Under the pieces are notes generated by a model. The model saw only the letters and a list, made by a program, of their open reading frames with translations. It had not been told where the DNA came from and ran no database searches. Below, piece after piece: positions 470 to 23,628 of a DNA stretch of 64,000 nt (the first letter of the stretch is position 1; every line of letters begins with the position of its first letter). The position numbers and the translations under genes are program-made. This DNA is from Bispira polyomma (taxonomy: Eukaryota), in NCBI GenBank assembly GCA_965649765.1, contig OZ287749.1, forward strand, positions 21,142,001 to 21,206,000, given 5' to 3'.

Positions 470-3130
470 CCAGTGGTTCTAATAAGCCAATTTGTAAAAA
501 TAAAAACAGTTTTCAGTATGATTTCATAAATAATTTTAGTTGTCCACTCAATGAGTCAATTATTCCATTGAGTTATAGTGATGCCAGTAAGACATCCCAA
601 GCATTACCTGCCAGTGTTTCCTTTAATGACTTATGTTTGCAAGACTTGCCTGTTAAATTGAACGTTATGAACTCTGTTCAGTGTGATAATTATGGTCAAA
701 AACCATCAGCTGTCTTTCATACAGTAGACGTTTATGTTAGCACCAGTAATTTTAAGTCTGATTGTCTAACTTATTGCTATATCGTTTGTCATGATGAGTC
801 ATGTATTTCAGGTGTATACAAATGGACTTATGGTTTAAATATGTGGTACTTACAACAAACCCCTTACATTCTGGATCACATATGGCCATTATCCTATGTG
901 AACACCACTTGTGCCACGACACTCAATCACACTCAACCAAATCAGTCAAAAAACCGTGCAAAACTTAATGTGGCACATACACACACAAAAATTGGACAAA
1001 CTTTCTATTATACAGATATCATTGACAAGATTTGCAAATCAAATTTTCAACACCAGAGCAATTCAGATTGTAACCATCAAGCTCCCTTACCCCTTGAGCA
1101 TCAATTTGATCAAGGTGATGCACTAGTACATAATGACAAGGTTATGAGTCAAAAATCTAAATTAGTGCATAATGAAACTTCTAGGATTCAAAAACCTATA
1201 TTGGTGCACCATGATACTTCTGTGATTCCGAAACCTACATTAGGGCATAATGAAACTTCTATGATACAAAAACCTATATTAGTGCACAATGAAGATTCCA
1301 TTATTCAAAAACCTATATTTGTACATAATGAAGACGTCATGATTAATGACATCTTACCACCTCAATCATCAGATACTAATGTGGACAATGTCACACATGA
1401 ATCCTTTCTTATTTCTAGAGACAGAACTTGTGGCTTCATACCACACAGACAGAACAGTTTTAAATTTGTGGGTCCAGACAGACAACCAGTTCTTATAACT
1501 TCTTATGACAAACTCATTGAGATTGCAGACATTGTTAAGAACTCTGGATTTCCCAACTATAAACAAGCCAGGATACCACTTAAGAGCACCCTCAAAGTTG
1601 AAAATTGGAAGAAATACCTGACCGATTATCCTGACAACATCATATTACAATATATTGAATTTGGTTTTCCCATTTCATTGTATGATAGAGATAGACTGAC
1701 AGTCAAAAATGTTAAGAACCATTACTCAGCAAAAACTTTTCCAGAAGCTGTGGACAGATATTTTGTCACAGAACTTGAACGAGGTACTCTAGTGAGTTCA
1801 TCTAATTCTGACCTTCATCCTGATATACACTGCTCTCCACTTTTGACTGTGCCTAAGGACACTGACAAGCGCCGTCTTATATTGAATCTTTCTCACCCAG
1901 CAGGCTACTCTGTAAATGACTGTACTGTTAAGTCCAAGTATGACACAATCGACTTCACTTTGAAATTACCCACTATTGACCAAAGTATGGACATAGGACC
2001 TAAGGCGACCTTAGCAAAGGTGGACGTTGCGCACACATTTAGGAACCTAAGAATAGATCCTTATGACTGTTTGAAGCTGGATTATATATGGAAGGAGCAG
2101 TGCTTTATTGACTTAAGTCTGACTTTTGGTCTCACTCATGGCACTGCTGCTTTTATGATGACCTCAGATTGTGTTACTTACATCATGAAACAAAAAGGTT
2201 TCACAGTTATGAATTATATAGACGATTTTTTGCTCATAGAACACGAAAGCCTTATCCTACGAAACTTTACAACAGATACTAACAGACTTAGGTCTTCCCA
2301 TTAACCCCAATAAGTTAGTACCTCCCAGCAAGCGGGTCACATGTATGGGCATTGTTATAGACATCCAACAAGAAACCCTCAGTATAGATAAGGAAAAATT
2401 AAATTCAATTCACAATACTTGCTTGGAGTTCAAACACCTGGGGAAAGTTCGGAAACAGAAGTACCAGTCGTTACTCGGCAAGCTATTGTATATACATCGA
2501 TGTATCAAACCTTCTAGGATTTTTATGAACAGAATGCTTGCTTTGCTACGTCAGTCTACAAGTCGTAAAGTTATCATTCTAAACGGTGAATTTCATAAAG
2601 ACTTACAGTGGTTCCTGTGTTTTCTAAAGCGGTTCAATGGTATTTGCAAGTACAGTTACTTAAACCAAGATAATGACATTTTATTACAGGTTGACGCCTG
2701 CTTATCAGGCATAGGGGGCATTTCAGATGACAAAGTGTTCAGGGTTGCTCTCCTTTCCTTCAATTTTTCCATTGTGCATTTTGAAATGGTCAGTGTTTTA
2801 ATAGCCTTAAAGCTATGGGGCCATGAATGGGAAAACAAAAAACTTAAGATACAATCTGACAACATGGCTGTGGTGGCTGTTGTGCAGTTTTCTAAAACTA
2901 GAGATGATTATCTCGGACTATGCCTCCGTAATATATGGTAAATCTGCGCTACTAAAAATATTGACTTAAATATCAGTCATATTCCAGGCAAAGACAATAT
3001 AATTGCAGATGCGTTATCTCGGTGGTATGAATCAGTGCATCATGCTGATTATGTAAAAAATATTATTATGGGCAACTTCATCTTGTATGACGTCCCCATT
3101 GACTTATTTACCCTTGACAGTTATATATAA
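445..3130 (+). pseudogene. RT/RNase H ORF2 of DIRS element 1, with a frameshift near 2250-2300 and a stop at 2939-2941
   Basis: DIRS RT motifs GFP, HCSPLLTVPK, RRLILNLSHP, AKVDVAHTFRN, LTFG, YIDDF; RNase H continues in ORF 2345..2941 and past its stop to TAA at 3130. Confidence 0.85.
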
Positions 3131-3136
3131 TTTCAG

Positions 3137-4116
3137 ACACTTCCTTACTTGCCACTTCACTGGTGCAAGATGCATTTAGACGTTTAGAACGGAGTCACAG
3201 ACCAAGAACACAGAAACAGTATGACAACCAGTTTCGATTGTTTCTGAGTTTCACAATTTATTATGACTTACAACAGACTTTTAGTTTCAACAGTATCATA
3301 GCTTTCTTTGAATTCTTGACTCAATCAGGAATTTCTTACAATGTCGTCACAAATTACCTTTCAGCTTTAAGACACAAAACTAAAGTGCTGAACATTCAGA
3401 ACACTGGGCTTTATGATCCCAGATTACCTTTATACACCAGATCCTTAGAGATCACTTCCAAGTATTCACCCAAGGTCAAAGGGGTTTTTGACTTAACTCA
3501 ACTCTTACAAATTTCTCAAGCATGTGAACAACTTCAGTATCCTGAGTTATTTAGGACAGCTTTTTTGTTTGCATTCTTTGGTTTTTTACGAATATCAAAT
3601 TTGACTCCCTCTTCAGGTACCCCCTTTGACCCCACTAGACATTTCACAAGGTCAGATATCTTATTTGCTCCTCCTGGTATTCACTTCATTATAAAATGGT
3701 CTAAAACAAATCAGGCTAGGACTTCTCCTGATATCATACAATTACCTTCCCTCAGCAATTCTTGGCTGTGTCCTGTTAGGGCTGCAAAGTCCCTTTTTCA
3801 AAAATATCCCCTTGGACCCATGGATCCTCTTTTAGCAAATCCTTCAAACACATGTCTTTGCTTAACAGACAGCAAGTTAAGATCTACATTAAAACTTATC
3901 CTTAATCAGCTAAACATCCCCACTGAAGGTCATTCTTTTCATTGTTTCAGGCGCTCTGGCGCCTCTTTAGCTTTCAATTCCAACATAAAACTCCAGCACA
4001 TACAAAAACATGGGTGCTGGAAGTCAGATGCAGTGTGGACTTATTTAAAAAATACTTCTCACGCTTCTTCTATCATCCCTACCACTTTTGCTTCTATTGT
4101 CTCTAAAGATTTATAA
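3137..4116 (+). CDS. Tyrosine recombinase of DIRS element 1 (reading frame intact, no ATG; preceded by a tttcag acceptor)
   Basis: Catalytic motifs FLRISN, KWSKT, HCFRRSGA, HGCWKS and WTY all present in ORF 3163..4116. Confidence 0.9.
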
Positions 4117-4220: not shown

Positions 4221-4711
4221 TCTTCGTCACTGCCACGAAGTAGCATGGCTAGTCAGCCATGGAAATGCTATACTTTACTGTACTTCTATTTTCAAACTAC
4301 TTGCTTATCACAGTCACTCCTCACCCCAACGCTGCATTCAGATAACACTCCCTCCACTCTCCTCGGCATTTTCCCCTTTTCTTATACTCTCACTGATAAG
4401 TCAGAAGACAAATCCTTCTTACTCTCCCCATCGCTTTGGTGGTGCATTCAGATAACACAGCCTCCACTCTCCTCGGCGTTTCCCGCCTTTCTTATACTCT
4501 CACTGATAAGTCAGAAGACAAATCCGTCTTACTCTCCCCAGCGCTTTGGCGCCCTTTCTAGGATAAGCTCATTATTAAGTCAGAAATCAAACTAACAACA
4601 TCAAAAATCTCCCAACCCTCCTCCCTTGTACATATTTGTAAAATATCCAAGGATTGTGGGCTTAATACTCACTCCTTTGCCTTAGGGCTTTAATTCTTTA
4701 AATTTGTTTAA

Positions 4712-5077
4712 GCTATGATTGGTTATTTGTTACCATATTGCTTACCTTTTCTGTTTAGCTATGATTGGTTATGTTTACCATATTGCTACAGTAGCTCTTT
4801 AATTCACTAGTTATATGTACCATATTGCTGTACTAGCATGTTGTTTTATTTTGTAGTTACCATTGGTTATATCTACCATATTGCTTTATTTTCTTATTTT
4901 TAGCCATGATTGGTTATACTTACCATATTGCTACCAGCATTTTATTCTTCGTCATCATTGGTTATATTTACCATGTTGCTTTATTTTCTTAATTTTAGCT
5001 ATGATTGGTTATGCTTACCATATTGCTATTAGTTTTTTATTCTTAAGTCATCATTGGTTATATTTACCATGTTACTT
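4712..5077. repeat. ~48-bp-period tandem array, about 8 units with core ATTGGTTATnTTACCATATTGCT
   Basis: Units visible at ~4714, 4761, 4807, 4860, 4905, 4955, 5000 and 5050. Confidence 0.85.
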
Positions 5078-5223
5078 TGTCTATGAGTTACCTTACTGTT
5101 ATATTTTCTCTTATGTGTTGGTTTTTTTTTTAAAACCCTTTACTTGCCTATTGGCATGTTAAAATTTTAGTTCTTATCTAAAATTTTCTGTATAGTTGTA
5201 CATAGAAGCTAAACATTTATAAA

Positions 5224-6030: not shown

Positions 6031-6104
6031 TAGTAAAAGGCAATTATGTTTCCTTTAAGTTTTGATTGTTGACTAAATTGATACATGAGACCATGTGTTT
6101 TAAG

Positions 6105-9100
6105 AACCCTGACAGCTCATCCCCACCTCGCAGGGACACCAGCTGACAAAGGACAAGCAGAAGAGATGAAACAGTTCTGGGAAGATCAGGGTCTGAAGTC
6201 CTGGCTGACCCCTTATAAGGTGTTGTTGTCATATCCAAATAAGGACAAACCCAACAAAATTGAGCTGCAAGATGGTTCAGGAAGTGCCCTATTTACAACA
6301 CAACTGGTGGAAAAGATCTTAAGACCAGATCAAAACCAGAGTGATGTGGTCCCACCTTTTAATGCTTTCTCAGGAAAAGGTATGCCACAGGTAAGTATAT
6401 ATATGAAATAAATTTAGTTCCTCCTCATAGCAAAGTTCATCAAAGTATCCACATAAATCTCAAAGCCTTTAAAATAAGTCATCTAGGTTCTCCAGATATA
6501 TTCATATATTTCCATAAGCAACAACATTTAATTCACTTATAAATCTAAACATCAATTTAGTTATTGCTTGATTTTGTATGAAAGATAGGGATGCTGACAT
6601 TTGAGGGATTCAATGAGAGGTCATATTTCGACAGACACAAAGAAAAAACACTTCAAAGCTCAACAATTTGTATTCAAGTTACCTTTGACATTGGTCAACA
6701 GTTAATATTATATGTTCCATGCATTTGTTACCAGCTGATTAAGCTGTGCCACTACAAAAGGTCTGTATTGGATAATCTGTTCTTTTTTCCACCGAATTAG
6801 GGTTCATTGGTGTATGTCAACTATGCAAGAGTGGAAGACTTCAACTTTCTGAAGGAAAGAAAGTACATGGACTTCACTGGTAAAATATGCATTGCCAGAT
6901 ATGGGAAGATCTTCCGAGGAGACAAGGTTGGTATTATGGAACAGATTTTTACTGCTGTTACAATTATTCATATAACTTTATTATTATATTACGACTTACT
7001 TTTTTGGAAATTTATAAAATATTTGTTATATCTGCAAGGCATATTGTTATTCCTCTTTTGTAAGTAAAAATTCTTATTGTAGTTTTTATATCACAAGTAA
7101 AGCTTTCTCACCAGATTAGATTAACTTGGGTTTACATTGTTTTTAACACGTCCATTGTCATATCATGATGGGCAGTTCACAGGTGGAGCAAACAGGGTAT
7201 TTGGTTAAGGTTTCTGCTCTGCAAACCACAGGCCTTCTTCAAGTATACTGCTAACATCCCCACATACATGCCCAGATTCGAACCCATGACTACAAAAATG
7301 GATGGCTGGTGTGGTACCACTACATTACTAAAGCCTTTACTTTGTTGCTAGGAGTTGTGTCTTTATATAAATTGGAAACATGGATCACAATGTTTGGCAT
7401 TGATATACCAGCAACAGTATCATTGTGCACATCGAAAGTGCAGATAAAACATGTGAAATCCAACTGTAGATAAGACATTGATTCATTTTTTACAAGGCTT
7501 ACAAGGCAGAACATTTTGGCTGTATGGGGCTGATCCTTTATACAGACCCCAAAGACTATGCTGTGGATCAGCTTGGTGATCAGGTTTATCCAAATACCTG
7601 GTGGCTACCTCCCTCTGGGGTCCAAAGAGGCCTTTTAAACAATGGCAAAAGTGATGCTCTCACCCCAGGATACCCTTCAATAGGTTTATGTTTTAACATT
7701 TTGATTTCGCTGTCTGTTCGTGGAAGTAATATATGTGTAGTTTGAATTTAGTTGGCATTTACATCATTTTCAAGAGTTTTTGTCATATCGCATGACATGG
7801 CCAGGCCAGATTCAGTGGTGGCTAAAGTACTGTAAACCACCGACCTATGGCAAGTACCTGAGAAACTTTCCCACATGAAAGAATGAATGGGCTGAGGTTG
7901 GTTACTAGTTAAATGTAGCATTATCCTATTGCTTGTTATTGATGAGTAAAATATGCAAGAGTAACTAATTTGAATGGTTTTTTTAATTTAGTTTCAAGTT
8001 AACAAGTGTTGTTTTTTACAACTAACCTCGGATAATCAATATTACGTTTACACACGAATAGTAGGATGTTGTTTTGCTTCAATTATACTTTTTAGAATGT
8101 ACTTTACAGTAGAAGTTTGAGGTGTAAAAAAAAGTTTGTGGTATTTTAAAGACAGATGTAACTAACAGACCACATATTCAAAAGTCACTGTTTTGTCTAT
8201 GTTTGTGAATGAAAGGCCTTTCAAGATCAACATTCTGAGCTAAGGTAGAAAAGACCAAGTTACAAAATTTTTAAAATATTAAAATGTCCTTACTTATTTT
8301 ATCACTCATCTTATTTGGATTGTCTGACTTACTATAGAGAAACGTTTAAGCAAAAATGGTAAGTTTCATAACTGGCTATCATGTGCATTACTTTCATGAG
8401 GGAACTACTATTTCGAAAAAAAAATAGAAAGAGAAGCAGTACATGTTATAAACTTGGCAATCTGAGTTATACTTAGAACAAGGAAATGGCAACTTCACAT
8501 TGGCAGACTTTGACCAATACAAACTGATCCATGCCGCAAAGCGAAGTGTTTTAGTTCATTATAAATACAAGAAGAAAGATGGGGCCATTCCTACACAATA
8601 AGAGAAAACAAAAACATCGGACTGCGTCAATAGATCGGATTAATCCAGGCCTTTGGACCTCATTTCTAGGGAAGTAATGCTGAGCGGTTTGGAGCCAGTG
8701 GACTTATCCTGTATACAGATCCATCAGACTATGGATCTAGTGATGGAGTCCAGCCATATCCCACCTCCTGGGGGCTCCCCAGTTCTGGGGTACAAAGAGG
8801 GAATGTAAGAAGAAGTGTAGGGGGCAGAAGTGGGGACCAGCTGACCCCTGATATGCCGTCTATAGGTGGTTAACTATTACTATCGGAGTTGTGTTTATGA
8901 TCGGTTTCACTCAGCATGGTTTGTGTTATTGTATTTATAAAGACGCTTCATTACCTTTATTTACTTTAAACAGGTTGACTAGTTCAGAGTTACTTTACTG
9001 GCTTTACAAAAGTGATAAAGTCTCAATGATAATTGGTAATAAAGTAATAACCTTGACACACAAGGGTTTCAGATTGTTTTTTTAAAAATAATAGGAAAAA

Positions 9101-12100
9101 ATTTAATTTCCAATAAAGGTTTTTTCTATCTTTCATTAATAACACTAATCTATAGTTTATCTTTTAAGCATAACCACACCTGCTATTTAAATCTGTCACC
9201 AATATATTGTAGCAATAAATGTCAAATTCGATATCATTAAAGAGAATATATTACACCTGCCAAGTGATTTAGACCTTATTGTTGTGCTGCTTACATGTGT
9301 CATTACATCATTAGCATTCCACCAGTTTGCAAGGGGTTGTGACAGGTTTATAGTACAAATGGCATTATTACTGTGATGTGCCTTGTAGGCCAAAACGGTA
9401 GAATACTTTGGCAGCCAGAGGTCTTATTTTGTATACTGATCTATAGGACTATGGGCCTCTTAATTCGGTAGAAGGCTATCCGGATACACAGTGAATACCA
9501 AGTTCTGGGGTACAAAGATGGTCTGTCCGTAGAAGTATTGGTGGTATTTTGGGAGACATGTATAAATATATATATATATATATATATACTGTCCACCAGT
9601 TTACAAAGAATCACAGGTTTATAGTGCAAATAGCATTAGTACTGTAATGTACTTTGTAGGCCAAAATAGCTGAAGACTTTGGAGCCAGAGGTCTTATTTT
9701 GTATATTGATCCATGGGACTATGGGCCTCAAAGTTTAGTACAAGCGTATCCAAATACGTGGTGGTTACCAAAGTCTGGTGTACAAAGAGGGGCTGTCCGG
9801 AGAAGTATTGGAGGCATTTTTGGTGACATGCTGACTCCNNNNNNNNNNNNNNNNNNNNNNNNNNNNNNNNNNNNNNNNNNNNNNNNNNNNNNNNNNNNNN
9901 NNNNNNNNNNNNNNNNNNNNNNNNNNNNNNNNNNNNNNNNNNNNNNNNNNNNNNNNNNNNNNNNNNNTAATGATATTCTGTATAGGGTGCAGTTCTAACT
10001 CTACACTGCCACTCCATACTTAGGACACTATGTAGATTTAAAACACGAAAATAATGCTGAAGTATTAATCATTAGTTTTTAACTTTATCCTGCCAGTCAA
10101 CATTAGAACATGATGTATGTTTAGAACAGCAAAATAATGCTGAATTTCGAATCATTAGTTTGTAGTACTTGTAGTACTTGTAGTCATTCTGTAAGTTTAT
10201 GCACTTTACACCAGATATACTAATCTTTTCAATGTCTATTACTATTCATTTTACATTACACTCTATTCTCAACTAACATATAAGTATAAGGTCCACATTA
10301 GCACCAGCCTCAGTTGCATCAATGATTCATTGCATGGTTTTACTAAATGCATTTTAAATGTATTACAATCACAAAACTATTAGTTGTATAACATTGGACG
10401 GTCTTGTTAAAAACAATTAAACCTGTTTCACGAAATGACATATACTATTCAGAAAACATGGTCAATTGATTCTATATTTCAGAGATTATTGTATTTCATA
10501 CTTTCTTGATATCAGATCTGAACCCTTCACTGATACATTAGGAATATAAGCAAACACAACTTTTGAAAAATTCGATCACCCCAACCCCACCCCAAAACAT
10601 GAAACTCCTTAATTATTAGAGGTTCATAGTGCTCAACCAAAGCAATTAAGACAATGTAGTTTTTTTCTCATATTCAGTGAGCAATGATGGGAAATATATA
10701 GCAATATATAACATTTTGCTACAAAGTTTCTAAGATGGCCAATTGATCATAGATCATCAAGTGAGTTTCTACATGAAACCTACATTTTCTTATCGTACCT
10801 TATCTTACTGTAATTACAATCAGCCATTTAAGACGTTCAATAGGTGATACCTCAGTTATACTGTCACTGGCTATCATTATATTTAATAATATTTTACATG
10901 AACTGTGAATCCAACTGTTCACATTTGTCCACCTATAATAATTTCATTCAGCAGCAACAAAAACTATCACACTATTAAAAAAAACCCATTTACCTTTCTT
11001 AACACCTATCTCCATTGTCACATTTTATTAATATTTTACCCTGTCCACAGCTAAGTACACAAAAGTATATTCTACAGCCAATAACCACACAGTAAAGCTA
11101 ATTATGCAATATTTTCCAATGATATGGGGGTGGTCAAGGCGGTCAGTTTACATGGGTCATACTCAATTTATATTCCACTATAGTCATCGCCTTACATGTA
11201 AGTTGCATTCTAAACCCACATCTAATTCGACTACAACTTGTTCTTTGTACTACTAGTGCATCTTTTGACAATTGTAAAATATGCTATGGTCAGTAGAATC
11301 ACTTGTGGACTAAGTGAAGAATGTATCACATTCTAAATTAGGTATACTAAGGCGATCACAGGACGAGTGATACACCCGACTAACACCACAGGGCATTCTT
11401 TATTCATCTTCTATGCAATTTTACCAATGACAACACATTGTCGACCCAGGACATTTTGATGTGGCTTCCTCTGCTGTGAGCGATCATTAGCGGCTATCTA
11501 GATAATAATAAAATGTCGCCACCGATCATGTGAGGGTTGTACAATGATACCATTTCAAGATAGTGGAAATGGTAGCCAGGCCTAAAGTGGGAAGCAGATT
11601 GGAAATGGAGTACCAAAGCTTTTGGTGGAGTCTGCGCAAGTTTATCACTATCGTACCACAGTGATTTACAGGTAATGCAGCCTATGACTTAGATGCAGGC
11701 ACAAAACAGATATTATGATGACAAAACATTTATCATTTATTTACCTGATGTCTAGGGGTATAAATGTATCCCGTTAAATGATTTATATTTTCAGGGTCGT
11801 CAAGCAGAAAGGTTTGGGGCAGCAGGCCTTATACTCTATTCAGATCCATTTGATTATGCCAATCCGGAATCTCAGGATGCTTATCCTGACTCCTGGTGGT
11901 TACCACAATCTGGAGTACAAAGGGGATCCACCTCTCTTGATGGAGATGTGTTAACACAGGGCTTTCCTTCTATAGGTCAGCAACACTCAGTTCTTATCTC
12001 AGCATACATACCTCTGGATACCAAACTACAACAAACAACAATAAGTTTTTATCAATAACAGTTAAGTTGTCACATAAAGAAAGACTCTTTTAATATTTCA

Positions 12101-15100
12101 AATCAACAACATTAATTTCCCCAACAAAACATTGGAACATTAATAATAGTCAATTACCTCCTGATAGTTATTAATGACAAGTAAATTATTTTTGCAGTAC
12201 TTACTTGATCATGGGAAAGTGTGAAATACTAACAGCATGTTTGCATAACTAATAAAAAGATCAAACTGCACCACTACATTGAAAGGTTGCACATTAAATA
12301 ACAACACAAACAACAAAGTAAAAACTATAGTAATTAGATGACATAATCTCTATTTTACCGTAGATATAAAATTTTGCAATTTAATGTGATGTTTTCTCAG
12401 TCATCAATATTTCAATATTGCAACATATCTTCTTTTGAATTTATTTTATACTACAAGCAATTACTGTATTCTTCCATTTAAAAGTTTTAATTTTAATGGT
12501 TAAGTAAAGAGTGACTCAATTAAATATATAAGCTAAAAAATTTAAAGATTTTGTTTTCTATATGACACATTTCTGTATTCCTTGTCTACACTGTACTCAT
12601 GCTGTCCACATTTCTTCCACAGAGAGTGCCTACAGGATCAAAGAAGAAGATGCAGGCTTGCTGACAATCCCTGTCCATCCAATCAGCTATGGCGATGCCC
12701 AAATACTGCTTCAGTAAGGTTTAATTGGGTCTTTAGGGGAATGGTGTGATAAAATCCTACAAAATAAATAATAATTGTGTCAAGAAATCAGGAAATATAA
12801 CACAACTTAGTTCTCATTAATCGTTTTATCATTGAACAAAAATAGTGTTGTTACAATTCATAAAGGAGGATCGCTGAGACACTGCTAAGGGTAAAGTAGG
12901 TTTTCACTGAAAGACTATCATGAACAATGCTTATGATGGTATATATGAGAAGCTATAATCAAAATTAACTTTTGGTTTTTGAGCAGTTTGAGTGAAAACT
13001 AGCACCAGTGTCTACTTGTCAGAGAGGTCTAAACAAATCTTTTGTTAGAAATATGGCCCTAGCCATGTATCATTGAATTCATTCATTGAATTTCTTCCAG
13101 AAACATGACAGGAGAGGAGGCACCGGAAGACTGGCAAGGTGACCTGCCCATTACATACAGACTGGGACCTGGCTTTACAAACAGTGACTGGTAAGTGACT
13201 ACTTTACTGGATAAGTTGTAATAAAATACAAATAAAAGCCCCCCACCCCCTTCTTTTGAAAAATCACTCAATTATTTTTTTTAATCATTTTTCAAATTTT
13301 AGCACCACCCTACAATTAAAATAATAAAGTGATGTTGAATTTATTACGGCAATAGGACAAGTGTTATAGCTTGAAAAACAATACCAAACAATTGTACTTA
13401 ATCAAGATTTAAGTAAAGTTTAAGGTTTGTTCTTTAGTTGTAGTTTTACTTGAGCAGTAGCAAAAACGCCCCACATAAACCATTAAATATCTAAAATGTT
13501 GTACCACTTGGTAATTATTGATACAATTTCAAATGAAATGAACTCCAGTAATTTATGTTATTTGTTAAGGATTTTTATTAAAGAATGTGTGTTTCCATAT
13601 TGACAATTAAAACTTGCAATTGAAACTACTACTTTGTATAAATTTTGTGAACAAATGATATTTCTTTTTTTTTTATTGGTTTATAGGTCTGTAAAAATGT
13701 TTATCAATACAGAAAACAAAGTGGCCACAACTTACAATGCATTTGCAATGATAAAGGGATCCATAGAACCAGGTATACTTAACCTGTTCTATATCAAATA
13801 AAAGTTCTGCCAATACAATTTAATAGTTTGCGTATAAGTTAGGCGAATGAGTATTACAGGTATTTGTTGACTGAACATGTTAATTGCAGCTTTGAATTAT
13901 AAAGCAAAGTATAATACAACAAAAGTCTTTTTCTTGACTTTTTTTAATGGACATTAAGATTTAATATAAAGTAAAAAATAACAAGGTAAACCTCTCTCAA
14001 AGCTTTATTACTCTGTGCAAATGTATTTTTTAATCCTCCAGACAGATATGTGTTACTTGGCAATCATCGTGATGCCTGGGTTTTTGGGGCTGTGGATCCT
14101 TCCAGTGGAACGGCCACCATGTTGGAATTGTCACGTGCCATGGCCAAGATGGTGAAAGAAGGTAAACCAGAATGCATCAGATATGGCAATTGTGTTTTAG
14201 AGTGTTACTACACTTTCGTATACTAATTAATATTTCTATTTCAAATTGTAAATTAAAATCTTTATTGAATCCCATGTTTAAAATCTTGATTTAGAACTAA
14301 ATATTTTGGTACATATACTTTTTCTACTGGTAAGCATGCTTCAGTTTATTTTCACTTGAAACTTCAAAACACTGAGTATATATTATACTTGTGTTAATCA
14401 GGATGCCTGCTGACAAATAACACTAAGCTTTTAATACTATATACTTTGGTAGTAACAGTTTCCTATTGTTTTAGGTTGGCGTCCGAGAAGAAGCATACTT
14501 TTCTGTAGTTGGGGAGCTGAGGAGTATGGATTAATTGGTTCTAGAGAATGGGTAGAGGTAAGTACAGTTACTAGTGAGGACTTAAATTGTGTCTTAGTAA
14601 TGCTATGTTTTCTTATCGTTACTTAGGTATGTATAGTTAGAGGTGTTTTAAATGAGGTTTTGAATGTTTTATTTAAATAACTGAATTTGTATCCCAGTAT
14701 AATTAGTCACTTAATTTCAATAACAGAGAGGACATTTGAGAGGCATACCTAGTATTTACAGGATTTTACTCCGATTTATTGTACATGATAAAAAAACCAT
14801 GAATTTTAATCAGCTTTTGAAAAAGGAAACAGTTATAGAATAATTGGTGTTTTTTTAGTTATATCATTCAATAAATATAGGAAATGGATAGCATAAAACA
14901 TTTGCAATCAAGCAGATAATAATATATGGTCAGGTTTGTAAAAAATTGTTTCAATGATATGTTTAAACATTTATTTTGTTGTATTTTGTTAGCAATATGG
15001 GAGCATGTTATCAGACCGAGCAGTTGCCTACTTAAATGTGGATATTGCTGTACAAGGTAAGTGGAATTACATAATTATCTTATTATGAAAAAAGTTTGCA

Positions 15101-18100
15101 CATCATTAAGCACCTGCTACGTTTGTTAAATTTAAATGATGAAGATAAAATGTGCAATATGTATGAAAAGAAAAGCATAATTACAGAAAAAACTCCCAAA
15201 ATTAGCAGACACAATCGTGGGTACAATAAAGGGATTCATTAAAAAATCCTCCGTATATTAATGTGGTGCTATTTTAAGACAAAGGTGTTGCATCCCCTTT
15301 TTCAGGAAACTTTACCTTCAGAGCAAGGGCATTACCCATCATAGAAGACACACTGTATGAAGTGGGTAAAGTGGTGAGTAAAGTGTCTATACTTACAGAG
15401 TTGTCTCTCAACTAGTCACATAGAAAATGACTTGTGATTACAGATTATTACTGTTTGTAATGTATTCACAACATAGTATATTAATTAATATTTCATCAAT
15501 GATTCCTGTTTACATTATCACCTGTTCTTTAATAGTGACATCTGTAATTTATAAAATAACACGCATCACTTATTCAACACCTATTTACAATACCATATTC
15601 ATCAATATAGCTTAGCATTTCCTTGGTCATTTCTATTTATATTACAATTTTTATTTATAATACCTCTTTAATAATATCATTTGTTAGCTGTGCTTATTGC
15701 GCTAATAATAATGTAGCTTAATATTTTATCAGTTCACCTATATGCTCAGGTACCAAACCCTGATGAGAAAGAAAAACAGGCAGGCCGGGAGACACTTTAT
15801 GACACCTGGGCATTAAGGTACTCTGCTAAAGACACCAATGGCCAGGAGACTGGGGTGCCTAAGTAAGTATGTTTTGTTAAGATAGAGCAATAACTTTACA
15901 ACTCATCAATTTCAAGGTAAAAAGTAAAACAATATTAATACAAGTTAAGTATGAAATATATCAATCTCAAAATGAAGCGCATAAGTATCAAATATGACAT
16001 AAATATCATCATAAGGACAATGCTAACAATTTATTTTTCAAATGTCTGTATTATTTTTCCCTGTTTATTTTTATACAGATACACTTCAACAAAAATGGCC
16101 TAAAATATTTTTTAATGCAGATACATTTCAACAAAAGAGGCCTATAATAAAAATTGATGCATCTTTAGAAAGTAATATAATAAAAATTTTCCAGCTGCAT
16201 CGAGTGCTTTAATCAATAGACCATACCCTCTGTGTAAATTTTTCCTTCAGGATTCCGATCCTTGGTTCAGGTAGTGACCATGCCCCCTTCATTAATAAAG
16301 TGGGGGTGACCTGTGTAGATTTACGTTATCACTATGATGAATCACTGGGAATCTCCTCCTACCCACTCTACCATTCGGTGTATGAGACATTTCACCTGGT
16401 CAATGATATTATGGACCCCACATTTGCAGTGAGTTACTATTTACACCATTTAATATCTTACAATTATTTAATTATCTTGTTTTATCGAGATACATCAGAA
16501 ATATGAAATATTTATTGTAATAAATATATAAATATTTATTTTATTATTTGTATAAAAGTAGAATCTATTGTAATATATTTGATACATGTACATATGAAAA
16601 GAAATCACAAATCCTTGTCAAAAATGTTGTGATGACTAAATCATACATATTTAGGGAATTCACTACAATATATTTTCAACATTGCTGTTTTAAACTTTAA
16701 TTAAATAGAATCTTAGTGGACATAATAAGTTATTGTTATTTGTGAGGAAGTCAGGTTTATGAAGATTATATACCACACATTCATAAAACAGACAACATTC
16801 CTACCACTATATTGCCAGCTGTCTAATTTTAATGTTGCTGTAATGAATATTGTCAGTTTCACAAGGCCACAGCTCAGTTCTGGGGAGAACTCGCACGACG
16901 ATTGGCTGACAATTATGTCCTACCCTATGATGTCAGACATTATGGCAAAGCATTAAGGGGGTTTCAGTCAAATGTTATGGATAACATTTACAATTTTGAT
17001 GCGAATGGCCTGGAAATAGAACTTGCTGAACCACTTAGTAAGTACACACTTTTCTATACATGGCTTCCATATTACGTAATATACATAAACACGTAACCAT
17101 ACACATAATCTGTGTTTGTATTTAAAGTGATTGCCTCATAATAAGTGAACTAGCTTCTGCTATATATTTATCACATGGACTTTGTATTTTCAAAATGTGC
17201 CATCTTAAAAATGTCACATTTTTTTATTTCCAGGATTCCTTGATGAAGCTATCTTTAAGATGATAACAGTTACGGAAGGGTTTAACAAGAAGCTCTTGAA
17301 AGTCAACAAGGAAAAGTAAAGAACTATCTTACATTGTCCACTTTAAACAAGATGACCTTCTTTAATCCTTTTTCTTTAGAGTAAAATTAATATTTACTTC
17401 ACACTTTTCACAACCATTAGTGTCTAACATGGAAAAATACATCTGATGATCACCACACAAAGGAAAAATAACAGAATTCTATTTGGGGTTTGACTGTTTT
17501 TGTAAATATCAAGAGGTTTAGATTTTCAAAGTATAAAGCTAATTCATATCGTACTCTTACTTCAAAAGTCAATTAATGTGCAGTTATAGGTAGTTAAGAT
17601 AAGAACTAAAATCCACCTAACAGTCTATAATGAAAAGCAAAGAGAGTTCCAACTGGTTGTCTCTTAGATAACTTTAAGTGGTCGTGGTCTGATTTTAGAG
17701 GACACAATTTGTGTAGATTTTGACTAAATACAGGAGTTTGTGTCCTCCTCCCTTGATACAGTAAAATCCTATATTATTTTATTTTTAATGAGTTTCATTG
17801 TTAGAGCAGAACTAGATAGACAAATTTTGAACTGACTAGGTTACTATATTACAAGTTATATTATATTACAAGTTACCAGTATATTCCCACTGTTTCTAGT
17901 GCGGTAGAAGTGCGTATGTTAAATGATCAGATGTTAAGGCTGGAGAGAGCCTTTATCAACCCAGGAGGACTTCCACACAGACCCTTCACCAGGTAAATAT
18001 CACATGGAGAGTAGGTTGTGTGTGACTTGTCAAAGTGTGTAGTAAAAAGCATTATATGTACAGTGTATTGATGTTTCATTGCACACTAGATAAATAAATA

Positions 18101-18788
18101 AAAAAATTCTGAACTACAGAAAACAATTGAAATTACAGATAAAGAACAAAAGCAATTGGCAAAATAGAATTTTAATGAACATATATTTGAAAGAAACAGG
18201 CATGCTTTTAAAACTTTATTTGATTAAATACATACATGTTTTACACAGTCAATGTAATATCCTGGGTGTAAATATATAGTAATCCAATTGCTACTAAATG
18301 TTTCTGACTTAACTGGTTCACCTCTCTCTGTGTACTACCAGTTTTATTTTAATGACAGGATAAATAAAAAAAATATTAGAAAAAAAGAAATTAATGAAAA
18401 TAAAAGCAAAACAACCCTGTTCAAAAGAAAAACAATTTGAATATAAACCAGAATTAAAGATATACTTAAAAACCCTTGTCATAATATACATTTTCGAGCC
18501 CATACATTTTCCCCTTTTTCCTCAGAAATGTAATATTCAACCCCTACTATGATATGTATTTTACTGTTGTTTCCCAGAAATGTGATCTTTGCACCCAGTG
18601 CCCACAACAGCTATGCAGGGTCCAGCTTTCCTGGTGTTGTGGACACCCTGTTTGAGATCAATAAGATATCTCCTGTGGATTATTATAAAAGGCTAGAAGA
18701 GGTGAGGAAACAGATATCTATTGTCACATTCTACATCCAGGCAGCAGCAGCAATACTGCAGGACTATGATGGATTTCAGTTCTCTTAA
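6105..18788 (+). CDS. Glutamate carboxypeptidase II / NAALADase-like M28B metallopeptidase (FOLH1/NAALAD2 family), 5'-incomplete. Exons: 6105-6390, 6801-6926, [one of 7497-7683 / 8670-8865 / 9660->gap / 11795-11975], 12623-12713, 13101-13190, 13687-13772, 14042-14161, 14475-14557, 14993-15056, 15306-15373, 15750-15862, 16251-16428, 16857-17037, 17234-17315, 17900-17992, 18578-18788
   Basis: All introns GT-AG and phase-compatible. Motifs [40 protein letters not shown] (Zn ligands), [12 protein letters not shown] (catalytic EE), [45 protein letters not shown]; AATAAA near 19314 and 19368. Confidence 0.95.
7110..7335 (-). mobile_element. Old tRNA-derived SINE remnant
   Basis: B-box GGGTTCGAATC on the minus strand; body resembles the other SINE-like sequences in the window. 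Confidence 0.45.
7497..7683 (+). CDS. Alternative PA-domain exon A (187 nt)
   Basis: acaag|GCT...ATA G|gt; [21 protein letters not shown]...[28 protein letters not shown]; open frame. Confidence 0.9.
7742..7885 (-). mobile_element. SINE central/3' remnant
   Basis: aaaccaccgacctatggcaagtacctgagaaactttcccacat resembles invertebrate SINE core sequences. Confidence 0.45.
8670..8865 (+). CDS. Alternative PA-domain exon B (196 nt)
   Basis: ttctag|GGA...ATA G|gt; [21 protein letters not shown]...[33 protein letters not shown]; open frame. Not in the ORF track. Confidence 0.9.
9389..9557 (+). pseudogene. Dead alternative exon C (frameshifted, truncated copy of exon D)
   Basis: Shares ~65 nt of upstream intron and its exon sequence with exon D; +1 insertion (ggcagccagagg); ends in an (AT)n tract. 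Confidence 0.8.
9660..9838 (+). CDS. Alternative PA-domain exon D (3' end lost in the N gap)
   Basis: ttgtag|GCC; [21 protein letters not shown]...[26 protein letters not shown]; open up to the gap. Confidence 0.85.
9839..9967. other. Assembly gap (N run)
   Basis: Run of N. Confidence 1.
11795..11975 (+). CDS. Alternative PA-domain exon E (181 nt)
   Basis: tttcag|GGT...ATA G|gt; [21 protein letters not shown]...[28 protein letters not shown]; open frame. Not in the ORF track. Confidence 0.9.
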
Positions 18789-22295: not shown

Positions 22296-23628
22296 GGTTC
22301 ATTGGTTTATGTCAACTATGCGAGAGTAGAAAACTTCATCTGGCTCAAGGAAGAAAAGAACATGGACTTCTCTGATAAAATCTGCATTGCCAGATATGGG
22401 AAGATTTTTCAGAGGAAACAAGGTTAATGTTGTTGAACAGATTTACTAATTTGAACAAATTTTATTGCATCAACAAGTAGCAGCAATTTACAGCAATAAC
22501 AAGAATATAAACATGATTATATCGTTATAATATGTATAACTATGATATTTAACGAAAAGTGACATATCAAATTTTCATTTAACATTTACCAAGTACAAAT
22601 ACACCCTTTCAAATATTTCAACTAGAACTGTTTTTTAAGTTCTAAATTAAACAGCTTGATTCTTACCAGTTAAAAATTAGTTCTGTTTTTAAGAGATACC
22701 TGCAAATGAATTGAATAATTTCATTGAAATTTCCATCTAGCAACAAGGTTGCAGTTAATTTGCATCACTGCTACTTATAATCCTAACTAGAAAAAAGAGT
22801 TGCATATTTCTAGATATGAATAAAATGTAGGTAACATCTGGTAACTCTGTGAGCATCAAGAAGAAAAATCATAAAATCAAATCATTTTTATAATAGCTCA
22901 TTTTTAGCTCAAGCAAATAGAACTACTCAGAACTGATTCACTGAGTAAAAAGATATTTTTCATACTGGCTAATCCATGGTTAGCCATCTTCAATGGTACA
23001 ACAATTGTACCAAAAAAAATAATTATAATTTATCATTTTACGATGCCCGACCAAAGGTATTATGAGAAGGAAAATTCACAACAAACCATGGAGTCTTTAA
23101 TGCAAATTGGGGCATCGTTGGTGTAGAGGTTGTACTATTGCCCCAACTTCTGCATTTGTGGGTGGAAATCCCAGCCATTACATCATTTTTTACATGACTT
23201 TGTGTATTGTCAATTATTTCCACCAATATGTTTATTACAGGTATTTATATAGTACAATACCATGGATAAGTATTTGCTATGCACGTTTACCTATGTCCAA
23301 GTATGTTATCCTTATAACATTGTACCACTGTTTATTCCACAACAAAATACTATACAGACAAATCAGGATCTGGATAGAAGGTTAAAACAGATGAACAGAG
23401 CTTCACACAGAGTTCAGTTATATATTTCTACCACATTATCACAAGAATTATAGATGCCATTAGATATGTGGCCTGTGTCCTAGAGGATACCAATATTAGG
23501 CACACTATTAAGACGACACATGCATTTGTAATTTCCAGGTGTTTCCTGGTGGTTGCCACAATCTGGAGTACAGAGGGGAACCACCTCTGTAGCTGGGGAT
23601 GTGCTAACACCGGGATAACCTTCCATAG
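22296..23628 (+). pseudogene. Dead partial duplicate of the GCPII-like gene (two exon remnants)
   Basis: 22296-22422 is a frameshifted copy of exon 6801-6926 with similar upstream intron. ~23530-23628 reads [27 protein letters not shown] (exon E-like) with a stop and a destroyed donor. Confidence 0.85.

Follow-up and report, generated by a model that had tools for sequence, protein, structure and literature searches.

Alternative copies of an S1′ pocket exon in an M28B peptidase gene of Bispira polyomma: a candidate for substrate choice by splicing

The gene discussed here lies in a stretch of 64,000 nucleotides of the Bispira polyomma genome (GenBank assembly GCA_965649765.1, contig OZ287749.1, positions 21,142,001 to 21,206,000 of the forward strand), referred to below as the window. 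It is a multi-exon gene of the M28B family, similar to glutamate carboxypeptidase II (GCPII) and NAALADase, located on the + strand at about 6082-18788 of the window, and one of its internal exons is present in a series of homologous copies. In copies A, B and E, and possibly in D, the layout is that of mutually exclusive exons, and the copies carry different residues at the position of human Asn257, which belongs to the S1′ pocket of GCPII. We estimate at roughly 55% the probability that these either-or exons, with their different S1′ walls, provide isoenzymes that prefer different C-terminal (P1′) residues of the substrate. An earlier examination of the letters made without database searches, called here the sequence-only reading, had already suggested that one gene may encode several such carboxypeptidases.

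Five homologous units, A to E, are found between two constant exons at 6801-6926 and 12623-12713. The duplicated exon corresponds to human residues ~214-274, in the apical domain, and the copies match one another by tblastn with expect values (E) of 1e-14 to 1e-22, above chance. Three copies are intact: A (7497-7683, 187 nucleotides), B (8670-8865, 196 nucleotides) and E (11795-11975, 181 nucleotides), all on the + strand, as are the other exons described. Each is 3n+1 nucleotides long, is preceded by a pyrimidine-rich AG acceptor, starts in phase 0 and ends in phase 1 at a donor of the form ATAG/GT. Copy C (9389-9560, about 172 nucleotides) is decayed, and copy D can be read in its 5′ part (9660-9838, 179 nucleotides). 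The constant exon upstream gives an ungapped match to human GCPII 172-215 and ends in phase 0 (AAG/GT), while the downstream one has a phase-1 acceptor whose AG completes a Glu codon with the final G of any copy. Skipping all copies brings a stop 13 codons into this next exon. Read one base out of frame, B runs into TAA at its third codon, and stops come early in D and E as well. Because of the phase-0 start, the phase-1 end and the 3n+1 length, only the inclusion of a single copy keeps the frame open, as is typical of mutually exclusive exon clusters. A, B and E share these phases and carry AG and GT sites, and including none or two of them breaks the frame. The layout is thus that of mutually exclusive exons, and their alternative use is predicted from the gene structure. 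The intron between A and B holds, at 7821-7922, a short repeat of very high copy number, with a contig word depth ~4000 times that of its neighbours in all three public DNA runs and many loose ends.

The sequence-only reading had listed the residue after the motif GVQRG as Leu in A, Asn in B, Ala in D and Ser in E. The four-copy alignment and the codon coordinates (7632-7634, 8802-8804, 9792-9794 and 11927-11929, respectively) bear this out, and the alignment to human GCPII that it called for places residues 3-64 of exon B on human 216-274, with the residue after GVQRG at Asn257. The loops that follow differ as described: LLNNGKS in A, STSLDG in E and longer ones in B and D. Counted to the conserved DxLT motif, their lengths are 7 in A, 11 in B, 11 in D and 6 in E, and 9 in the human enzyme.

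These differences fall on a well-defined part of the enzyme. The S1′ site of human GCPII is formed by Gly518, Phe209, Arg210, Lys699, Leu428, Tyr700 and Asn257 (PMC9976286). Five of these seven residues are encoded in constant exons of the gene and kept, one (699) is in a constant exon and changed, and one (257) is in the swappable exon. Docking and molecular dynamics have further indicated that the backbone amides of Leu261-Gly265 bind carboxylates of larger P1′ groups (PMC8674901), so the indel-rich loop would also border the pocket. On grounds of homology, the variable residues are thus predicted to lie at the S1′ pocket and not away from it.

The rest of the active site was mapped by comparing exons singly against solved structures, with native human numbering taken from the 750-residue GCPII chain 9hlw_A. 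Phe209 and Arg210 are encoded at 6912-6917, in the constant exon 5′ of the cluster. The zinc ligands His377 and Asp387 fall at 14065-14097 in an exon aligned to 9hlw_A 367-409, and the catalytic Glu424, the zinc ligand Glu425 and Gly427/Leu428 of the S1′ wall at 14519-14533, likewise aligned to 9hlw_A. Gly518, Arg536, Tyr552 and His553 are retained at 16270-16374, in an exon covering the 9hlw_A range 511-571, whose human positions were derived from the 9hlw_A ranges on the assumption of a single one-residue gap after 536, as in the NAALADL1 alignment. The last exon (18578-18788, 9hlw_A 686-747) carries Ser at position 699 and a conserved Tyr700 at 18609-18614, with the stop codon at 18786-18788. 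For Asp453 the placement relies on an NVD motif together with a two-row profile that matched NAALADL1 weakly (E 0.033), and for Arg463 on its motif, a structure search with that very short exon having returned no match.

All zinc ligands (His377, Asp387, Glu425, Asp453 and His553) and Glu424 are therefore accounted for, Asp453 weakly, and the protein is predicted to be catalytically competent. The retention of the zinc ligands, of the Glu pair 424/425, of Phe209/Arg210 and of Tyr552/His553 agrees with the sequence-only reading, by alignment except for Asp453 (motif and weak match). Arg210, Tyr552 and Tyr700, which hold the C-terminal alpha-carboxylate of the substrate (PMC10794815, PMC9768917), are all present. 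The three changes in constant exons noted earlier are equally real: Lys699 is replaced by Ser (HNSY), Asn519 by Ser (GSGSD) and Arg534 by Asp (VDLRY). In human GCPII, Asn257 and Lys699 bind the gamma-carboxylate of a P1′ glutamate (PMC10794815, PMC9768917). This glutamate-specific pair is missing here, with Ser at 699 and Asn257 in copy B only. The arginine patch (Arg463, Arg534 and Arg536) with Asn519 is likewise incomplete, 536 being kept, 534 being Asp and 519 being Ser.

The copies bear clear signs of long-term purifying selection. A, B, D and E are 53-68% identical in pairwise protein comparison and share 27 invariant columns. Their identity is 0.66-0.75 at codon positions 1 and 2, and 0.29-0.51, near random, at position 3. 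Nonsynonymous divergence (dN) among them is 0.30-0.46, and synonymous divergence (dS) is saturated or undefined. Copy C differs from D by only ~13% and yet is frameshifted and contains stops. Since the older copies are saturated but intact while the young copy C is broken, A, B and E would be functional exons and not relics, as D would have been until recently at least. The shared scaffold includes the motifs AExFG, GLILYxDPxDY, YPxxW, GVQRG and DxLT. The last contains the calcium-site Thr269, kept in all of A, B, D and E, as are the calcium-site residues Glu433 and Glu436 in a constant exon. The copies differ mainly at three places, namely the homologue of Asn257, the loop of 6-11 residues after it and a second loop at ~235-241. 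The matching contigs of two samples show no polymorphism, so variants offer no selection test.

Copies C and D lie next to an assembly gap of 129 N (9839-9967). D has an acceptor and is readable through GDMLT and two bases of a Pro codon, and its 3′ end and donor fall inside the gap; the letters encoding Ala257 and the following pair of arginines are real reads. From 9968 the letters resemble the last ~15 bases of exon B and its donor region, with indels. Because this flank carries indels, the frame across the gap is undecidable and D is not callable as a working exon. Copy C is a broken young duplicate of D together with about 80 nucleotides of its upstream intron, and the mean column identity of this stretch to the D unit is 87%. 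It has a 1-nucleotide insertion, in-frame stops and GVQRW in place of GVQRG, gives only partial tblastn matches, and is found in contigs of both samples. A (TA)n run at 9553-9596 closes copy C and precedes the D unit. The public contigs break there, the gap follows 240 nucleotides further on, and this region is hard to assemble.

The explanation that we favour is that an ancestral exon covering residues ~214-274 was multiplied in tandem and that A, B, E and possibly D were kept as mutually exclusive alternatives, exactly one being spliced into each transcript. Since constant exons supply the catalytic centre and the remaining S1′ residues, the choice of exon would exchange just one wall of the pocket, which would become hydrophobic (Leu), hydrogen-bonding (Asn) or small (Ala, Ser). 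The outcome would be three or four carboxypeptidase isoenzymes differing in P1′ preference. None of them is expected to be glutamate-specific in the human sense, because position 699 is Ser. The several carboxypeptidases of the sequence-only reading are thus backed by the either-or layout and by the pocket mapping for A, B and E, while D drops out as a callable member. A more specific version, in which a three- or four-way cluster exchanges the wall that reads the substrate side chain and thereby includes a hydrophobic Leu257 form unseen in sampled relatives, is put forward tentatively and with less confidence than the general proposal.

Losing Lys699 is not peculiar to this gene. It is absent from each of the six family members found in the genome, with Ser here, Asn in four tandem paralogues and Ala in a fifth, and nematode and fluke orthologues have Ser, Trp or Gly instead, the nematode proteins also having Ser for Asn257 (PMC10794815, PMC9768917). 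The sequence-only reading had proposed that the Arg-Arg pair in the loops of B and D might substitute for the lost lysine. The pair also occurs in four paralogous genes with Asn699, as GVQRG-NVRR(T/S), and is not a compensation private to B and D. Among exon homologues of the Asn type, 21 of 36 have Lys or Arg at 259/260, and no basic residue stands there in copies A and E or in the fifth paralogue (Thr-Val-Phe, with Ala699). These data fit a basic residue at 259/260 acting as a stand-in for Lys699, an unproven role.

Wider comparisons place the cluster in the history of the family. Searching short reading-frame proteins with a profile yielded 93 homologues of the exon, and the vertebrate-type ones among them (P0055, P0059, P0060, P0067, P0073, P0074, P0082, P0086, P0090 and P0091) were included in the tally and in the tree; P0059 resembles human GCPII over the stretch compared. 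The residue after GVQRG is Asn in 36, Thr in 27, Ser in 25, Ala in 5 and Leu in none, so that within this sample the Leu of copy A is a new state and the Ala of copy D a rare one. The loop is 5-13 residues long among the homologues, and the four copies of a single gene cover almost the whole of this range. The six homologous loci of other eukaryotes described below include no close relative, the best identity to any copy being about 60-70%. Exon limits at ~214-274 are common to vertebrate-type genomic reading frames, so that the duplicated unit is an ancestral exon.

Within the same genome (1.04 Gb in 75 contigs), the contig that contains the window, designated C2, carries four tandem M28B paralogues at 17.956-18.033 Mb on the − strand (L005-L008, L014-L017 and L021-L025), each with one copy of the exon. 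A fifth paralogue, at C2 96.74-96.76 Mb, has Thr at 257 (GVQRG-T) and Ala at 699. In a moderately supported tree of exon peptides, B pairs with D, the 18-Mb paralogue exons join this pair, and E branches outside them; A remains a long unplaced branch. This topology gives a hint that the cluster dates from the paralogue duplication or earlier, 66 columns being too few to settle the matter.

Other remains of duplication were noticed around these genes. Fragments with stops lie at C2 18.087-18.094 Mb (L019, L024, L027), near the tandem paralogues. Downstream of the window gene, also on the + strand, there is a broken partial gene duplicate: the piece at 22296-22412 has 79% protein identity to the exon 6801-6926, and ~1.1 kb beyond it an E-like half-exon (23544-23627) reads GVQRG-T and contains an in-frame TAA. 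No further exons of the gene were found around this 22296-23627 duplicate. Two M28B loci of other species contain minisatellites derived from coding sequence, one with ~50 tandem units of 82 nucleotides repeating the last part of the first large exon (L030:4396-8609) and the other with 57-nucleotide units copied from the WGAEEEG...REWVE catalytic exon (L031:5816-9560). On the 5′ side of the peptidase exons, an open frame of 332 amino acids at 3118-4113 (+), with no Pfam match and with low-complexity repeats beyond it at ~4700-5160, is probably a mobile-element remnant standing at the spot expected for the first exon of the gene.

Several results weigh against the proposal. The 257-265 loop varies throughout the family, and for this reason some of the difference from copy to copy could be tolerated drift. 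No orthologous cluster was found among the 93 matches, none of which exceeds 70% identity to copy A or about 70% to the other copies, and six homologous loci of distant eukaryotes (within L029-L035) show one exon copy between the same neighbouring exons. Public runs containing the stretch number three, all of them DNA runs from a single study, with no RNA run among them. A candidate docking/selector RNA pairing, in which 12311-12334 pairs with 7324-7347 and 10238-10257, was rejected, the systematic scan having scored no higher than shuffled controls. For D, no placement across the gap gives a 3n+1 exon with a GT donor when the flanks alone are compared. The first exon or exons, with the expected membrane anchor, were not located upstream of 6082. 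Lastly, the M28B enzyme of Fasciola was inactive on peptide libraries (PMC9768917).

The variability of the loop also nourishes the best-surviving alternative, in which the exons tune some other trait, such as catalytic rate, pH or ion dependence, stability, secretion or the binding of partners by the apical domain. The second variable segment at ~235-241 is not known to touch the pocket, and the apical or PA domain is a ligand-binding surface in the transferrin receptors, which are weak matches to exons of this gene. But the sole position differing in all four copies adjoins the invariant GVQRG and is a listed S1′ residue (PMC9976286), and a change from Asn to Leu in the S1′ wall is unlikely to leave the pocket unchanged. 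This alternative seems unlikely to us.

It is less probable still that a single dominant copy is spliced in and that the others are unused relics of local duplication. The single exon copy at the loci of other species and the restriction of public runs to DNA would be in keeping with this, and local duplication is indeed ongoing, as witnessed by copy C and the E-like fragment. However, A, B and E have diverged by ~45% in protein sequence and their synonymous sites are saturated, and yet frame, 3n+1 length, splice sites and invariant columns are intact, whereas the much younger copy C is broken already.

A slightly weaker contender is that the protein is not a carboxypeptidase at all and that the S1′ logic of the human enzyme cannot be transferred to an NAALADL1-like aminopeptidase or to a catalytically silent protein. 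NAALADase L has been described as a likely aminopeptidase, and the inactive fluke enzyme offers a precedent for silence (PMC9768917). NAALADL1 is the best match for three exons, the Asp453 exon (weak) among them, and Ser519 and Asp534 are NAALADL1 states too. Yet alignment shows the other four zinc ligands and Glu424 to be kept, and Asp453 has its motif and weak match in support. At E ≤0.01, the exons with Arg210 and Tyr700 find GCPII and GCPIII but no NAALADL1, which favours a carboxypeptidase mode. Looking at the gene as a whole, the Pfam domains PA, Peptidase_M28 and TFR_dimer are matched on separate exons in gene order, and human GCPII, GCPIII and NAALADL1 structures are matched exon by exon with E of 1e-9 to 1e-15. 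For the swappable exon, the last exon and those with Arg210 and Glu424, NAALADL1 scores lower or gives no match, and exon-wise structure matches did not reveal an overall likeness closer to NAALADL1 than to GCPII or GCPIII. The transferrin receptor matches concern some constant exons (those with His377/Asp387 and Glu424). The gene is accordingly assigned, from these comparisons, to the M28B di-zinc exopeptidases of the GCPII/NAALADase group.

It is very improbable that misassembly around the gap and the (TA)n run between C, D and E created the extra copies. Across 6801-7850, 7854-9552 and 9597-9838, public contigs of two samples (three DNA runs) agree with the window in every letter, so that copies A, B and C, like the readable section of D, are real DNA, and the divergence among A, B and E is far too large for collapsed haplotypes.

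If different P1′ preferences are indeed set by these either-or exons, the GCPII/M28B family would have its first example of a specificity switch programmed by splicing, and residues 257-265 would stand out as the specificity determinant of the orphan invertebrate M28B enzymes, for which no substrate or activity is known (PMC9768917). GCPII, also called PSMA, is a major drug and imaging target whose pocket has been studied in great detail. Alternative versions of the exon bearing the Asn257 wall would constitute a natural experiment on the part of the fold that sets P1′ and a supply of ready-made variants. Together with the four tandem paralogues, they suggest that one lineage may diversify the same pocket by both gene and exon duplication.

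The gene can be compared with several known systems. With human GCPII (FOLH1/PSMA) and GCPIII it shares the three-domain build, the zinc ligands (Asp453 by motif), Glu424, the Arg210/Tyr552/Tyr700 clamp and the limits of the ~214-274 exon. The human gene, in contrast, has a single copy of this exon, with Asn257, where the present gene has three or four alternative copies with Leu, Asn, Ala or Ser, and the replacement of Lys699 by Ser, of Asn519 by Ser and of Arg534 by Asp makes an acidic P1/P1′ specificity unexpected here. Like the GCP2.1-2.3 proteins of Caenorhabditis elegans and the M28B enzymes of Schistosoma and Fasciola, the predicted protein keeps the zinc site and Arg210 and has an eroded arginine patch (PMC10794815, PMC9768917). 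The splice variants of C. elegans differ at the protein ends and not in the pocket, and no exon cluster has been described for nematode or fluke M28B enzymes (PMC10794815, PMC9768917). A literature search combining mutually exclusive exons with glutamate carboxypeptidase found nothing relevant. In the same genome, the four tandem paralogues and the one at 96.74 Mb diversify by gene duplication and have one exon copy each, whereas the window gene diversifies within one transcription unit. The closest parallels in principle come from other enzymes. In COQ-2 of helminths, annelids and molluscs, the either-or exons 6a and 6e near the active site change the substrate (PMC7434440); this is a two-way choice in a polyprenyltransferase, established by transcripts and genetics, as against a three- or four-way choice predicted from gene structure in our case. 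In ACSL6, a vertebrate acyl-CoA synthetase with two variants demonstrated as transcripts, mutually exclusive exons swap the segment that forms the fatty-acid gate (PMC1543647). Should the proposed switch be real, a peptidase would join COQ-2 and ACSL6 on the short list of enzymes whose substrate is chosen by mutually exclusive splicing.

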